Positions 14,315 through 51,380 of a DNA stretch of 64,000 nucleotides are shown piece after piece. The number at the start of each line of letters is the position of its first letter. Position 1 is the first letter of the stretch. Source of the DNA: Hemiscyllium ocellatum. Taxonomy: Eukaryota. A program made the position numbers and the translations under genes. The stretch covers positions 131,375,740 to 131,439,739 of the forward strand of contig NC_083401.1 in the NCBI RefSeq assembly GCF_020745735.1. Reading direction: 5' to 3'. The notes beneath the pieces are model-generated. The model saw nothing but the letters and a program-made list of their open reading frames with translations. It was not told where the DNA came from and ran no database searches.

Positions 14315-14467
<153 letters not shown>

Positions 14468-31105: not shown

Positions 31106-31357
<252 letters not shown>

Positions 31358-33194: not shown

Positions 33195-33383
<189 letters not shown>

Positions 33384-40736: not shown

Positions 40737-40832
<96 letters not shown>

Positions 40833-43154: not shown

Positions 43155-46100
43155 ATAGATAGAACATAGAACATAGAACAATACAGCACAGAACAGGCCC
43201 TTCGGCCTACGATGTTATGCCGAACATCTAATCTAGGTTAAGCACCCATCCATGTACCTATCCAATTGCCGCTTAAAGGTCGCCAATGATTCTGATTCTA
43301 CCACTCCCACGGGCAGCGCATTCCATGCCCCCACCACTCTCTGGGTAAAGAACCCACCCCTGACGTTTCCCCATACCTTCCACCCTTCACCTTAAATTTA
43401 TGTCCTCTTGTAACACTCTGTTGTACCCAGGGTAAAAGTTTATGACTGTCTACTCTATCTATTCCTCTGATCATCTTATAAACCTCTATCAAGTCACCCC
43501 TCATCCTTTGCCGTTCCAATGAGAAAAGGCCGAGAACTCTCAACCTATCCTCGTACAACCTATTCTCCATTCCAGACAACATCCTGGTAAATCTTCTCTG
43601 CAACCTCTCCAAAGCTTCCACATCTTTCCTATAGTGAGGCGACCAGAACTGCACACAGTACTCCAAATGTGGCCTAACCAAAGTCCTGTACAGCTGCAAC
43701 ATCACTTCACGACTCTTGAATTCAATCCCTCTGCTAATGAACGCTAATACACCATAGGCCTTCTTACAAGCTCTATCCACCTGAGTGGCAACTTTCAAAG
43801 ATCTATGTACATGGACCCCAAGATCCCTCTGTTCCTCCACCTGACTAAGAACCCTACCGTTAACCCTGTATTCCGCATTCTTATTTGTTCTTCCAAAATG
43901 GACAACCTCACATTTGGCAGGGTTGAACTCCATCTGCCACTCCTCAGTCCAGGTCTGCATCATATCTAAGTCCCTTTGCAGCCGACAACAGCCCTCCTCA
44001 CTGTCCACAACTCCACCAATCTTCGTATCATCTGCAAATTTACTGACCCACCCTTCGACTCCCTCATCCAAGTCATTAATAAAAATTACAAACAGCAGAG
44101 GACCCAGAACTGATCCCTGCGGAACTCCACCTGCAACTGGGCTCCCGGCTGAATATTTACCATCTACCACCACTCTCTGACTTCGACCGGTTAGCCAGTT
44201 TTCAATCCAATTGGCCAAATTTCCCTCTATCCCATGCCTCCTGACTTTCCGCATAAGCCTACCATGGGGAACCTTACCAAATGCCTTACTAAAATCCATG
44301 TACACTACATCCACTGCTCTACCCTCATCCACATGCTTGGTCACCTCCTCAAAGAATTCAATAAGACTTGTAAGGCAAGACCTACCCATCACAAATCCGT
44401 GCTGGCTGTCCCTAACCAAGCAGTGTCTTTCCAGATACTCATAAATCCTATCCCTCAGTACCCTTTCCATTACTTTGCCTACCACAGAAGTAAGACTAAC
44501 TGGCCTGTAATTCCCGGGGTTATCCCTATTCCCTTTTTTGAACAGGGGCACAACATTCGCTACTCTCCAGTCCCCTGGTACCACCCCCGTTGACAGTGAA
44601 GACGAAAAGATCATTGCCAACGGTACTGCAATTTCCTCTCTTGCTTCCCACATAATCCTAGGATATATCCCGTCAGGCCCGGGGGGACTTGTCTATCCTC
44701 AAGTTGTTCAAAATGTTCAACACATCTTCCTTCCTAACAAGTATCTCTTCTAGCTTACCAGTCCGTTTCACACTCTCCTCTTCAACAATACGGTCCCTCT
44801 CGTTCGTAAATACTGAAGAAAAGTACTCATTCAAGACCTCTCCTATCTCTTCCGACTCAATACACAATCTCCCACTACTGTCCTTGATCGGACCTACCCT
44901 CGTTCTCGTCATTCTCATGTTTCTCACATACGCATAAAATGCCTTGGGGTTATCCTTGATCCTATCCGCCAAGGATTTTTCATGCCATCTCTTAGCTCTC
45001 CTAATCCCTTACTTCAGGTCCCTTCTGGCTATCCTGTATCCCTCTACTGCTCTGTCTGAACCCTGTTTCCTCAACCTTATGTAAGCCTCCTTCTTCCTCT
45101 TTACTAGACGTTCAACCTCCCTTGTCAACCAAGGCTCCCTCACACGACCATTTCTTTCCTGCCTGATAGGTACATACATATCAAGGACACGTCGTAAATG
45201 CTCCTTGAAAAAGTTCCACATTTCCACCACATCCATCCCTGACAGCCTATGCTCCCAACTTATGCTCCTCAAATCCTGTCTTACAGCATCGTAATTTCCC
45301 TTCCCCCAATTGTAAAATCTACCCTGTTGTGCGCACCTATCTCTCTCCATAACCAAGGTGAAAGTCACAGAATTGTGGTCACCATCACCAAAATGTTCAC
45401 CCAGTAACAAGCCCATCACTTGTCCCAGTTCATTACCGAGTACCAAATCCAATATGGCATCCCCTCTGGTTGGACAATCTACATACTGAGTTAGATAAGC
45501 TTCCTGGACACACTGCACAAACACCGCCCCATCCAATCTACTTGATCTAAAGAGCTTCCAATCAATATTTGGGAATTGAAGTCGCCCATGATTACGACCC
45601 TGTGGCTTCTGCACCTTTCCAAAATCTGTTTCCCAATCTGTTTCTCCACATCTCTGCTGCTATTGGGGAGCCTATAGTAAGCACCCAACAAGGTGACTGC
45701 ACCTTTCCTATTTCTGACTTCAGCCCATACTACCTCCAAAGGCAGATCCCCCTCAAACTTCCTTTCTGCAGCCGTTATACCATTTCTAATTAGCAATGCC
45801 ACCCCCCCTCCTTTTTTACCACCCTCCCTAATCTTACTGAAACATCTGTAACCAGGAACCTCCAACAACCATTCCTGTTCCTCATCTATCCACGTTTCCG
45901 TGATGGCCACAACATCGTAGTCCCAGGTACCGATCCACGCCTTAAGTTCACCCACCTTATTTCTGATACTCCTTGCGTTGAAGTATACGCACTTGAGCCT
46001 ATCTCTGTGTCCGCAAGTATTCCCTGTCAGTGCTACCTTCTCCACAGCCTCCCTACATTCTTGGACATCCTGACAAACAGCTAGCTTACTTGCTGGACTA

Positions 46101-46476
46101 CAAGTCCGGATCCCATCTCCCTACCAAATTAGTTTAAACCGCCACCCGAAGAGTGCTAGCAAACCTACCCCCCAGGATATTGGTGCCCTTCTGGTTCAGG
46201 TGCAACCCGTCCTGTTTGTACAGGTCCCACCTTCCCCAGAATGCAGTCCAATTGTCCAAATACCTGAAGCCCTCCCTCCTACACCATCCTTGCAGCCACG
46301 TGTTCAACTGCACTCTCTCCCTATTCCTTGCCTCACTGTCACGTGGCACCGGCAACAACCCAGAGATGACGACTCTGTCTGTCCTAGCTTTTACTTTCCA
46401 GCCTAACTCCCTGAGCTCTTGAATGACCTCCCCACCCCTCTTCCTACCTATGTCGTTGGTGCCAATGTGTACCACG
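43155..46476 (-). mobile_element. Relatively young 5'-truncated CR1 LINE: end of ORF1 (SGNH esterase-like) plus frameshifted ORF2 (AP endonuclease and RT)
   Basis: ORF1 motifs VHIGTNDIG and DGLHLN (46134-46493). APE motifs YFNARSIRNK, AITETW, MGDFN, LDLVL, GDHN. RT motifs [25 protein letters not shown] (43298-44653). 3' (TTCTATG)n tail at about 43155-43180. Confidence 0.95.
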
Positions 46477-46623
46477 AAGATGCTGCTGTTCAATGTAGAT
46501 ACAGTCCGTGCAGATACTTTTCTGGTAATTTTGTTTCTGTGAATACTGCAAGAGCCATCACTGTGAGAATGAACTTACAAACATGGAATAGACATTGACT
46601 TGATTTTTGCTTTCATGTTACAG

Positions 46624-46701
46624 AATTAATCTACAAGGAGGTAATGGATTTTGAAGAGAAAACTAAAAACGGTGTTGTGAAGGGACAACCCTCTCCCTCA
46701 G
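46624..46701 (+). CDS. MAPK10: JNK3 penultimate coding exon: (E)[25 protein letters not shown]
   Basis: 78 nt. Acceptor tttcatgttacag; donor CAG|gtaaat. [16 protein letters not shown] is JNK3-type. Confidence 0.95.
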
Positions 46702-47409
46702 GTAAATCCAGTAACCCTGTACAGAGATTGTCACAACCCTCTCCCTCAGGTAAATCCAGTAACCCTGTACAGAGATAATCACAACCCTCTCCCTCAGGTA
46801 AATCCAGTAACCCTGTACAGAGATTGTCACAACCTTCTCCCTCAGGTAAATCCAGTAACCCTGTACAGAGATTGTCACAACCTTCTCCCTCAGGTAAATC
46901 CAGTAAACCTGTACAGAGATTGTCACAACCCTCTCCCTCAGGTAAATCCAGTAACCCTGTACAGAGATAATCACAACCTTCTCCGTCAGGTAAATCCAGT
47001 AACCCTGCACAGAGATATTCACAACCCTCTCCCTCAGGTAAATCCAGTAACCCTGTACAGACAGAATCACAACATTCTCCCTCAGGTAAATCCAGTAACC
47101 CTGTACAGAGATAATCACAACCTTCTCCCTCAGGTAAATCCAGTAACCCTGTACAGAGATAATCACAACCCTCTCCCTCAGGTAAATCCAGTAACCCTGT
47201 ACAGAGATAATCACAACCTTCTCCGTCAGGTAAATCCAGTAACCCTGCACAGAGATATTCACAACCCTCTCCCTCAGGTAAATCCAGTAACCCTGTACAG
47301 ACAGAATCACAACATTCTCCCTCAGGTAAATCCAGTAACCCTGTACAGTGATAATCACAACCCTCTCCCTCAGGTGAATCCAGTAACCCTGTACAGAGAT
47401 AATAACAAC
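46685..47409. repeat. 48-bp minisatellite, about 15 copies, seeded from the exon/intron junction
   Basis: Unit acaaccctctccctcaggtaaatccagtaaccctgtacagagat(aa/tg)tc. CAG|GT recurs every 48 nt from 46702 to 47374. Confidence 0.97.
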
Positions 47410-48059
47410 GTCTGACAATCAATCTTATTTTATCTTGTTCAGTTTTATTCCGTTATTCCTAATCCATTCCAGAAATGTGTTTAACCCATCATTTGAATAT
47501 ATTCTCCAGCTGAAAGTTTATATATTTTATTGTAAGTGTTCCGAAAAGTCTAAATCGTTTTGTTGGTCAATACATTAACAGAAAACAGTATTGGATTTAT
47601 TGAGTAGGGTTGTGCAGAAGCCTGAATGATGTATGCTATGCTGAGATTTAAGGCAGAACTACATGAGATGTCTGGGCAGGCATGTTCCAATGTCACCTTG
47701 CTCTATCTTTTATCTGTTTGCTGGGCAGCAAGACAAGGTTTCTCATTCGGCAATGGGGAGTTGCCAATTCAGAGGATTATTGTTTGCTAAACACTTAAGG
47801 TAATACTGCCGTTTGTCTCATTAATATTCACTTTTCTGTTTTGCCAAATGTGCAGAACAATCTTGATGTGGAGTAGTGTCATCATGGACTTCAGAATGGG
47901 CACCTGAAGAATTCAGCACTAAAGGACCTCCATATTAGACACTGGGCATCAACATCTCAGGATACTGGCTACATGAGCCCCATATTCACAGATATTGGTA
48001 TCTGACATGTATAACCTTCTGGGAATCCTTGTGGCATATGTCTGATTAGACTTTTTTTT

Positions 48060-48374
48060 AGAATAGACTCCCTACAGTGTGGAAACAGGCCATTCGGCCC
48101 AACAAATCCACAATGACCCTCCAAAGAGTATCCCACCCAGACCCATTTCTCTCTGGTTAATGCACCTAACACCATGAGCAATTTAGCAGGGCCAATTCAC
48201 CTGATCTGCACATCTTTGGACTGTGGGAGGAAACCAGAGGACCCAGAGGAAATCCACGCAGACACAAGGAGAATGTGCAAACTCCACACAGACAGTCGCC
48301 TGAGGCTGGAATCGAACTTGTGACAGTGGTGCTGTGAGACAGCAGTGCTAACCACTGAGCCACCATGCCGCCCA
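48060..48374 (-). mobile_element. V-SINE (HE1-like)
   Basis: Full copy, with the head gcagtgctaaccactgagccaccatgccgccc. Confidence 0.88.
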
Positions 48375-50480
48375 CTTACAGGATATTTCTGCACTTTAAC
48401 ACTACACCTCGGGTTTTACTAGCAACTCTCATTGTAACGGTGTAGCAGGGACACTGTGCACTCAGGGATGCACATCCAGTTCATGGACTGGACCAGGCTC
48501 TCTCTCCAGTCTGGCCATTTCCTGTCACAGTGTACACTCACTCTGAGTCTACTCAGAGCATCACTTGTCTTGGCTTGCTTTGCCTTTTGCCCCCTCAGCC
48601 ATGGATACCAGGCTGTATTGCCTTTCTGTTCAGCACAGATACAGGCTGAAAGCTTCTCATGGTTGTGAGCAGATCTCTGTCAAATCGAGGGAGATAGCCT
48701 TCAGGTGTGAGCATAGTAAGTCAGGAGCATTCTCTGAAACGAGTCCAGGGGGTTGTCCATGGTCAGTCAGCCCCTTGGGCATGGCCAGAGTCAGCAGTCC
48801 CTCCACGTGATGGCGAGGAGCTGAATGTCAGGCAGCTCACCACTCATTGTGACATTTTCTGGCCCATTGTGGGCTGTTTTCATCCTGGAATGGTTGGCGG
48901 TGGGGTGGGGGGGGGGGGAGGAGGCATGAAATAAGGGAGTCAAAAGTGGGTGGCATGTGCTGTTGTTGTTGGTGCAGGTAGTGAGGTGCCCTAAGCAAGT
49001 GACTGGGCAGCACAGAGGGCATGCAGGGTTAGTGCTGTCAAGGAGCAAATTACAGCAGATGCTAGAAACTGTACTAAAAACAAAAAATGCTGGAGATCAC
49101 AGCAGGTCAGGCAGCATCCATGGCGAGACAGCAAGCAAACATTTTGAGTCTGGATGATTCTTCATCAGAGCTGACGTTAGTGCTGTCGAGGGTTGTGGAT
49201 GACAATGAATGAAGGAAAATGTCATAGGCAATAGTGAGCCTTGGTGGCAGCTGGGTACAGTAGCAGAGTTAGAGTGAGTATTAGGTATCACTTACCCCGG
49301 CAGAGTGAGCAAAGTTATTTGACCTTCTTCCTTCATCATTGTGGATTCCTCCAGACGGCTAGAAGCAGTGATCCGGTCATCAATCTCGGACCAGACTGAG
49401 TAATCTGGAAACAGGCTGGTATGGTGTGGTGTATTGGGTGTTGGTCCTGGGGTAAGCAGACACCCTGCATTGGCACCACCCCATCCAGTAGGGCATCCAG
49501 TTTCAGCCCACAAAGAGGAATGTCAATTTCCCCTTGTCTGCCACATCTGGGGTAAATGTCATGAACTGCACAGGACTGCTAAGAACCAACAGCTTTTCCA
49601 GGTGCCCAACGGGCAATGCACCAGGGATGCGGTCAATTTCAGGATATCTGGTAAGTGGTGAATTGTTCTGGGAATGGCTGATGGTAAGATAAGGCTAGAA
49701 TTGGACAAGAAGGACACCACAGGGACAAGTTGATGAGGTGAGATTGTTAAAAATACACCTCTCTTTTACTTTGGTAAAAGTCTCCTCTCTGGATCATGGT
49801 TCTTTAAGTTTTGCTCTTCCTTTCCTGGTCACTAGGGGGCAGTAAATAATATAAAATGAAGTGAATTTGAAGGATTGAAATTGGGACAGAGAGCAGGATA
49901 ATCCGGTGTGACTGATTCCTGACAATATGCTTTTGCCAATGTGTTCTAAACATTTTTAGAGAAGTGGCATTTTCTGGTTGTTGTCACTAACGTGGTGACT
50001 GCTTCCTCATCAACATTTTGACTTTCTTCCTGTTTGGGCATCATTTGGAATGCTGGCCAATTATACTTTAGAGATGGAGTTAGTCACTAATCTTTGAGAA
50101 TATATTGACACATTCCTATCGGCTTTTTGTCTAAAGTTACAGGATGAAGGAAAATATCATTCCTAATGGCTTTTCTGATTTGGGACTTTGTCACGTGAGG
50201 AATATTTTCAGCCCTTTGCTCTGAAATGCCTTCTTGCCTTTCAAAACATTCTACAAATATACTTTACACAATCATATTTGATATGGAATACATTTTTACC
50301 TTGCCTTTAAAAACTTACTTTAAAATTGATTACAGTTTATATGAAGATTAATTATTGAGCTATCTTCTTAAGATGCTCTTTGCTCAAACATTTTACTAAC
50401 ACCGTCAGATCTAAAACTCTATTGCCCTATTAATTTTTTTTTGATTCATGCCTGAGAAGGTGGGGTGACTGAATTTAATA

Positions 50481-50830
50481 GCACATAATCCCTACAGTGT
50501 GGGAGCAGGCCATTCTGCCCATTGAGTCTACACCAATCCTCCAAAGAGCATCCCATCCACACCCACCCTGTCCCTGTAACCCTGCATTTCCCATGGCTAA
50601 TTCCACTGAGCCTACACATCCCTGAACACTGTGGGCAATTTAGCATGGCCAATCCACCTAACCTGCATGTCTTTGGACTGTGGGAGGAAACCGGAGCACC
50701 CGGAGGAAACCCACGCAGACACAGGGGCAATGTGCAAACTCCACACAGACAGAAGCCTGAGGCTGGAATCAATACTGTGTCCCTGGTACTGAGGCAACAG
50801 TGCTAACGACTGAGCCACCATGCCACCCCA
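50481..50830 (-). mobile_element. V-SINE (longer subfamily)
   Basis: Full copy with internal duplication (ccatggctaattccactgagcct / catggccaatccacctaacct). Confidence 0.86.
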
Positions 50831-51380
50831 CGGTATAAACTATGTGTTTTTATCATTTCCAATATTCAAGGAGCCTATTCTACACGTGCAAATGCCCTGC
50901 CCTCAGTTGACAGCAGAAGTTTGAGTGTTGCTGGTAGTGACTCTCCAGTTCTACCTCTATTGTAACAGTTGACAGAAACTCCTTATGTGAAGAATGGGGT
51001 AGGCTTTGACTCTGAGATAATATTTAATAGATGCTATTGAACTAGCAGATTATATTGCGTATGACCTTTATTTACATTGAAGTCAATGGAAATTAAATCT
51101 GGACGAGTTTGCTCTTTGGTATTGAATGGAATATGTCATTGAATTTGCCATGTATTGAATGGAAATGCTCAAGCTCTGTGGCTGCTGAAATCTGAACGAA
51201 TAAAATAAAACACAAATGAATGAAAAAAAAGGTAGAAAGGCAGGTATTCAGAGGGACACAAATGGTTTACAGTGAAATAGTGATAGGTAAGTGGGTAAGA
51301 AGTTGGCAAATGGAGTACAATTTGGGAAAACATGAAGTTATTCATTTTGGATGGGAGAGCAATAGAACAGGATATTAATT

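Follow-up and report, generated by a model that had tools for sequence, protein, structure and literature searches.

A minisatellite across the penultimate coding exon-intron boundary of shark MAPK10 (JNK3) reiterates the 5' splice site in frame

When an exon is followed by a long row of copies of its own 5' splice site, which of them is used by the spliceosome, and do the others have any consequence for the gene? This question is raised by MAPK10, the gene for the neuronal kinase JNK3, in the epaulette shark Hemiscyllium ocellatum. The window analysed here is a stretch of 64,000 nucleotides of contig NC_083401.1, and all coordinates below are positions in this window, on the + strand unless the minus strand is named. 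Within it, a minisatellite with a 48-bp unit starts inside the penultimate coding exon of MAPK10. Repeat unit 1 is made of the final 17 nt of this exon and the opening 31 nt of the following intron. As this unit lies across the boundary, the 5' splice site recurs in all the units that follow.

Host gene, array anatomy and donor phase

The host gene was identified as MAPK10/JNK3 by the source names of matching proteins and by the best PDB matches, and tblastn with JNK3 proteins located five MAPK10 exons on the + strand. Three upstream exons (31137-31319, 33208-33332 and 40737-40800), found by tblastn with exact boundaries and also matched in PDB, fixed the identity of the gene and its frame. 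They are followed by the penultimate coding exon of 78 nt (46624-46701), which encodes (E)+25 residues and whose last 17 nt are the start of unit 1. Beyond an intron of about 14 kb, which carries the array, lies the last coding exon (60846-60990, up to the TGA stop), encoding a JNK3-type C-terminus that ends in PLCCR. When the five exons are joined, the last one being taken from 60851 to 60990, they give 195 residues, and these match, at 195 of 195 positions, the C-terminal end (195 residues) of MAPK10 isoform X1 from Chiloscyllium, a bamboo shark belonging to the same family. The product of the first donor is thus that of annotated shark MAPK10.

Three tandem acceptors (60844-60856) allow the last coding exon to start at 60846, 60851 or 60857. 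The start at 60846 leads to a short form ending in AQVQQ, that at 60851 to the long form GAAVNSS...PLCCR, and that at 60857 to a form beginning with AVNSS. The acceptors before 60846 and 60851 are the classic pair, 5 nt apart, and a junction of the 60857 type (GQPSPSAVNSS) is annotated in tetrapods. The end of JNK3 reads GPLCCR in sharks and a ray, with one Gly less than the GPLGCCR of the chimaera, bony fishes and tetrapods. Read past the TGA, the frame (60988-61032) gives LTVCLRDPFFFRK before the next stop, and LTVCLRDPFFFRK resembles ...CCRWLAACLRNPAFFRRW in genomic ORF translations of other vertebrates, where W occupies the position of the stop. Far upstream, a weak tblastn match of 26 residues was obtained at 14372-14449. 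It resembles an exon of the kinase domain of JNK, from the set that is used in a mutually exclusive manner, and the window would therefore hold roughly the 3' half of MAPK10. The range of the orthologous gene is about 205 kb.

Tandem Repeats Finder detected a single array at 46685-47409, with a period of 48, 15.1 copies, 93% matches, 0 indels and a score of 1233, and this is the sole minisatellite in the 64-kb window. In an in-register table of the units, it resolves into 15 full units plus 5 nt, the latter being a partial 16th unit, ACAAC (47405-47409), after which the sequence leaves the consensus. The consensus unit opens with ACAACCCTCTCCCTCAG|GTAAATCC. A 33-nt core containing the donor matched 15 times at exact steps of 48 nt, against 0 matches in 100 dinucleotide-preserving shuffles. 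The pentamer ACAAC that closes the array also opens unit 1 (46685-46689); it forms a 5-bp direct repeat with a spacing of 48 bp, which was likely the seed of the first slippage duplication. A matrix of pairwise differences among the units uncovered a higher-order duplication (46925-47356), in which units 6-9 (46925-47116) and units 11-14 (47165-47356) show 1 difference in 192 nt at a period of 240 bp. To judge from the sequence, these near-identical blocks indicate that part of the array was probably duplicated recently and that turnover is ongoing; the terminal ACAAC pentamers and the single-difference block duplication can together be regarded as signs of ongoing slippage or unequal exchange.

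Around the array, neither other repeats nor inverted repeats were found, and comparison with Rfam gave zero matches. The exon bearing the array is surrounded by the longest + strand stretch of the window that is free of AATAAA and ATTAAA (44078-51092; 7.0 kb, about 5 expected by composition), and the GC content of this stretch is 45.5% vs 40.6% in the window. On the minus strand, the whole array is crossed by two ORFs free of stops, with lengths of 263 aa (46631-47422) and 251 aa (46663-47418). They consist of repeated 16-aa units and are by-products of the repeat period, and they could be miscalled as genes.

The authentic 5' splice site, CAG|GTAAAT (donor 1; 46699-46707, the exon ending at 46701), fits the consensus at 8 of 9 positions, the sole mismatch being at +5; consensus values of donors are approximate and served for ranking only. 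It is followed by 14 reiterated donors at 48-nt steps (46747-47379), all in the same phase as donor 1. The G of their GT lies at 46750 ... 47326 in 13 copies of CAG|GTAAAT and at 47374 in CAG|GTGAAT. In the whole array, CAG|GTAAAT is consequently intact and identical in the 14 units from 1 to 14, CAG|GTGAAT is present in unit 15, and all 15 GTs are preserved. The single change in a donor is A to G at +3, with which the donor remains valid. By hand count in the unit table, about 13 mutation events are distributed over the 48 unit positions, and the donor 9-mer has 1 of them against an expectation of 2.4, so that no signal of selection is seen on the donors, which are neither protected nor degraded.

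Two further splice-site motifs are copied along with the donor. A second, weak GT (CCA|GTAACC, GT at 46711-46712), situated 9 nt into the intron, is present in every unit. Each unit also contains a look-alike of a 3' splice site, consisting of a 10-nt pyrimidine run and CAG|G, fused to the donor as CCCTCTCCCTCAG|GTAAAT. This look-alike arises because the copied exon tail codes for QPSPS, and its combination with a donor in every unit means that the array offers 48-nt pseudo-exons as well as motifs resembling recursive splice sites.

The predicted consequences of using a later donor follow from the phase. Donor 2 would enlarge the exon to 126 nt, adding 16 residues in frame, and donor 3 would enlarge it to 174 nt. 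The first in-frame TAA (46776-46778), located in unit 2, ends the frame of transcripts in which donor 3 or a later donor is used or the intron is retained. Its distance upstream of the last junction would be 19 nt with donor 3, 67 nt with donor 4 and up to 595 nt with donor 15. The TTG that keeps unit 1 open is also found in units 3-5, and the open frame is not peculiar to unit 1. A previous sequence-only reading of this stretch had claimed a unit of 17 exon and 31 intron nt, 15 in-phase donors at 46702, 46750 ... 47326 and 47374, normal JNK3 from donor 1, a 16-aa addition from donor 2, the TAA at 46776-46778 for donors 3 onward, and distances from it to the last junction of 19 nt for donor 3 and at least 67 nt from donor 4 onward. 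The unit was reproduced by Tandem Repeats Finder and the in-register table, every donor was found by motif and unit-table checks, the three products came out as claimed on translation, and recalculation of the distances returned the same values. That reading had no mention of the 3' splice-site look-alikes, the acceptor at 60857, the second GT, the bounding ACAAC pentamers or the block duplication.

Search for products of the later donors

The donor-1 junction, GQPSPS|GAAV, is present in the MAPK10 models of Chiloscyllium, Scyliorhinus and Heterodontus, comparison sharks that are known here from proteins alone. In the shark MAPK10 proteins retrieved (Chiloscyllium, Scyliorhinus, Heterodontus, Narcine and one isoform of Hemiscyllium), the junctions are normal except for a form with GKST, discussed below. 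The peptide of the exon plus the array was compared with a collection of 5.8 billion proteins, and neither an array peptide nor GKSSNPVQR, the end predicted from the TAA in unit 2, was found among proteins of 27-87 aa. This search returned only exon/intron read-through ORFs of other vertebrates, and the collection thus holds comparable ORFs. GKSSNPVQR occurs in 0 of the 318 MAPK10 proteins retrieved. A query with the last exon against a representative library of 1.84 billion sequences yielded JNK3 fragments, which were used for exon mapping, and no shark array products.

At the RNA level, the predicted fold of the exon with four units was no more stable than those of shuffles (z = -1.1), so that no special structure would hide or expose the donors. 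A scan of the + strand detected no AATAAA or ATTAAA within 4.4 kb downstream, and a read-through isoform made by intronic polyadenylation was dropped as a candidate for lack of such a hexamer in this range.

The GKST junction is found in MAPK10 isoform X4 of H. ocellatum (XP_060688045.1), which is identical to isoform X5 of Heterodontus. As derived by hand, it requires a 9-nt extension of the exon to CCA|GTAACC (46710|46711) joined to 60857. Teleosts, coelacanth and a frog have an equivalent +9/+6 junction (GTxT), which in them is confined to the 350/351-aa isoform; this isoform, in sharks as in the other three groups, combines an exon longer by 9 nt with an acceptor that lies 6 nt within the last exon. 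Moreover, wherever GKST or GTxT has been seen, there is exon skipping far upstream as well. The GKST isoform was at one point considered transcript evidence for the +9 donor and was downgraded, because GTxT recurs across taxa only in one exon-skipping isoform. The pattern suggests that a single template protein has been projected by annotation pipelines and that it does not represent independent RNA support; a conserved +9 alternative donor is a possible other reading.

Minisatellites at exon-intron boundaries of human genes

The sequence-only reading presented the arrangement as unusual, a view that has to be given up, since a class of minisatellites with the first monomer across an exon-intron boundary has already been described in human F7, IFI6 (6-16), CBS, LMNB2 and PDGFA (PMC1557585). 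The array of shark MAPK10 belongs to this class: units of minisatellite size are arranged head to tail, the first monomer lies across a genuine and conserved exon boundary, and the authentic donor is reiterated in the intron. Two patterns of donor usage are known among the human genes. In F7, LMNB2 and PDGFA, the authentic, most upstream donor alone is used (PMC1557585). In IFI6 and CBS, the first three donors, i.e. also the two nearest copies, are reported to be used (PMC1557585, PMC4526556, PMC2630376).

F7 is the best-studied case. Its intron 7 contains a minisatellite of 37 bp in 5-9 copies (Borensztajn et al., 2006, PMC1557585), and, as in shark MAPK10, the first monomer spans the boundary and identical pseudo-donors come after the authentic donor. 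Every copy proved to be functional in a set of 50 minigene constructs, and the most upstream intact copy was always chosen, in three cell types (PMC1557585). Downstream copies raised to a consensus value of 91 fail to compete with it, and only perfect-consensus copies do so (PMC1557585). When the first copy is mutated, the next copy takes over, and usage drops with distance from the exon while exon skipping rises (PMC1557585). The same report describes the repeat as having no autonomous regulatory element (PMC1557585). The F7 and shark arrays differ in that the F7 unit comprises 4 nt of exon and 33 nt of intron (17 and 31 nt in the shark), in that its period of 37 is no multiple of 3 whereas that of 48 keeps the frame, in donor strength, that of F7 being weak (UGG|gugggu) and that of the shark agreeing with 8 of 9 consensus positions, and in copy number (5-9 against 15).

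In IFI6, intron 2 contains 25 pseudo-sites, and the first three donors are reportedly used constitutively to produce three mRNAs and protein isoforms (Turri et al., 1995, cited in PMC1557585 and PMC4526556). IFI6 resembles the shark gene in having an authentic donor and then many copies of it, and it provides a precedent for the use of donor 2; on the other hand, IFI6 is an interferon-induced gene and the shark host gene is a conserved kinase. The VNTR of CBS at exon 13/intron 13 (c.1444_1467+7) has a unit of 31 bp in 15-21 copies, or 15-20 as listed in PMC1557585, and two of its pseudo-donors are reported to be used (Yang, 2000; Lievers, 2001; cited through PMC1557585 and PMC2630376). It is similar to the shark array in that the unit lies across the exon/intron border and in copy number, but its period of 31 bp is out of frame in contrast to the in-frame 48, and a disabling change of the kind reported for the CBS VNTR is absent from the shark array. 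The junction repeat of LMNB2 (100 bp in 10-15 copies) and that in intron 4 of PDGFA (81 bp in 16-18 copies) (PMC1557585) also reiterate an exon/intron junction with copy numbers similar to that of the shark; their units are longer than 48 bp, and in both genes the authentic donor alone is used.

A different comparison is that with recursive splice sites, the AG|GT ratchet points. The shark units share their motif, a pyrimidine tract followed by CAG|GTAAAT in which 3' and 5' splice-site motifs are juxtaposed. However, recursive sites are single, conserved and situated deep in very long introns, whereas the motif of the shark is a by-product of copying the exon end that codes for QPSPS.

Neutral array or functional donors

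Judging from the sequence and from the human analogues, we consider it probable that the array is a neutral intronic minisatellite that was born by slippage and is spliced out whole with the use of donor 1, the donor usage being inferred from annotation and precedent. The array would have been founded by slippage during replication, or by unequal exchange, at a pair of ACAAC pentamers spaced 48 bp; one of the pair was located in the penultimate coding exon, 17 nt from its end, and the other 31 nt into the intron. The spliceosome would then use the first copy of the donor, which may have the advantages of being transcribed first, of closing the 78-nt exon together with the upstream acceptor, and of adjoining the purine-rich segment of the exon (purines make up 69% of the unique part of the exon vs 44% of the repeat unit). 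The other 14 copies would leave with the 14-kb intron without any trace in mRNA, and donors 2 and 3 would be used at a low level at most, as in human IFI6/CBS. Three points tell against this neutral reading: the shark donors are stronger than that of F7 (8/9 vs UGG|gugggu), where perfect-consensus copies did shift usage; IFI6/CBS show that constitutive use of the second and third copies is possible; and low-level use of donors 2 and 3 would not be purged, because the exons made with them would be of normal size and their products immune to NMD. As a whole, the array is most likely neutral, and its copy number is probably variable.

The sequence-only reading had left the choice between such a neutral expansion and a copy-number-dependent dial on JNK3. 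The anatomy on which both alternatives were built stands. The neutral alternative is favoured by human precedent, by the donor-1 junctions, by the lack of an array peptide in the proteins searched and by the lack of selection on the donors, and the dial finds no support.

Among the other explanations, the one that survives best supposes that donors 2 and/or 3 are used constitutively, as in IFI6/CBS. Shark-specific JNK3 would then exist with a 16-aa insert before either C-terminus, together with a truncated form ending in ...GKSSNPVQR. Donors 2-14 are indeed 9-mers identical to donor 1 and share its flanks (17 nt on the upstream side, 31 nt on the downstream side), and no structure masks them. 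The frame is open through unit 1, and the stop reached with donor 3 would lie only 19 nt from the junction. IFI6, in which use of the first three donors reportedly yields three mRNA species, and CBS are precedents. Against this, the insert peptide is absent from the proteins retrieved, including the one epaulette shark isoform (X4), usage in F7, LMNB2 and PDGFA is restricted to the first donor (PMC1557585), and the open frame of unit 1 is nothing special in view of the TTG shared with units 3-5. Constitutive use of donors 2 and 3 appears unlikely, yet it is plausible in that the copies are near-consensus and their products would escape NMD.

A broader proposition is that copies beyond the first are used to a measurable extent, either as alternative donors or as 48-nt cassettes delimited by the acceptor-like and donor motifs within the array. 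This is conceivable given the strength, identity and common phase of the donor copies. The outcome would be C-terminal variants of JNK3 specific to the lineage, or a drain through NMD dependent on the length of the array. The variants may carry an insert of 16 aa that contains an additional Ser-Pro motif, or may end in ...GKSSNPVQR and lack both canonical tails. We regard this outcome, in either version, as quite unlikely.

It is improbable that the array, while absent from mRNA, has a role at the level of pre-mRNA as a platform for U1, as a set of recursive sites or as a store of back-up donors. Such a role could take the form of better definition of the 78-nt exon, less premature cleavage in the 14-kb intron, stepwise removal of the intron, or an in-frame back-up for donor 1. 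Each unit has the pyrimidine run and CAG|GTAAAT, and if donor 1 were spliced to an AG of this kind, an identical donor would be formed again. Intronic enhancers that bind U1 are a concept in the literature, the + strand is devoid of AATAAA and ATTAAA over 44078-51092, and in F7 the next copy replaces a mutated first one (PMC1557585). Nevertheless, other vertebrates splice the penultimate exon without an array, according to annotated junctions, and conservation gives the idea no support; there is no excess conservation of the donors within the array; and the F7 repeat is reported to be without an autonomous regulatory element (PMC1557585).

The copy-number dial, in which many donors are used and the length of the array sets the fraction of transcripts subjected to NMD and hence the dosage of JNK3, is very improbable. 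Its arithmetic holds, in that with donors 4-15 the distance from the TAA to the last junction downstream of it would be 67-595 nt. The nearest precedent is the 31-bp VNTR of CBS, which is reportedly tied to reduced enzyme activity, as the title of a paper by Lievers from 2001 has it. The dial is unsupported because it needs donors 4-15, whose use is without precedent: copies beyond the third are used in no studied case, and in F7 usage falls with distance and exon skipping occurs instead (PMC1557585). Exons of 222-750 nt, as these donors would make, are increasingly disfavoured. Selection should also act against a drain on the dosage of a highly conserved neuronal kinase, but all 15 GTs have been preserved. 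Nothing available suggests that the array regulates JNK3.

The notion that the length or structure of the array is an assembly artefact, produced by collapse or expansion of a shorter repeat, is the least credible, for although tandem repeats are error-prone and this one is known here from one assembly, the array is only 725 bp long and has unit-specific substitutions, an orderly higher-order pattern and no indels.

Returning to the neutral reading, in which the array is silent, the locus would be a natural demonstration that position, not sequence, selects among identical 5' splice sites. In this respect the shark array is a stricter test than human F7, because its copies are near-consensus and in frame. 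There is also a practical risk, in that junctions within arrays of this kind can be placed wrongly by gene predictors and by RNA-seq aligners. If, on the other hand, copies beyond the first were used, shark MAPK10 would be a rare case in which a deeply conserved kinase of neurons acquires new C-terminal isoforms from a tandem repeat.
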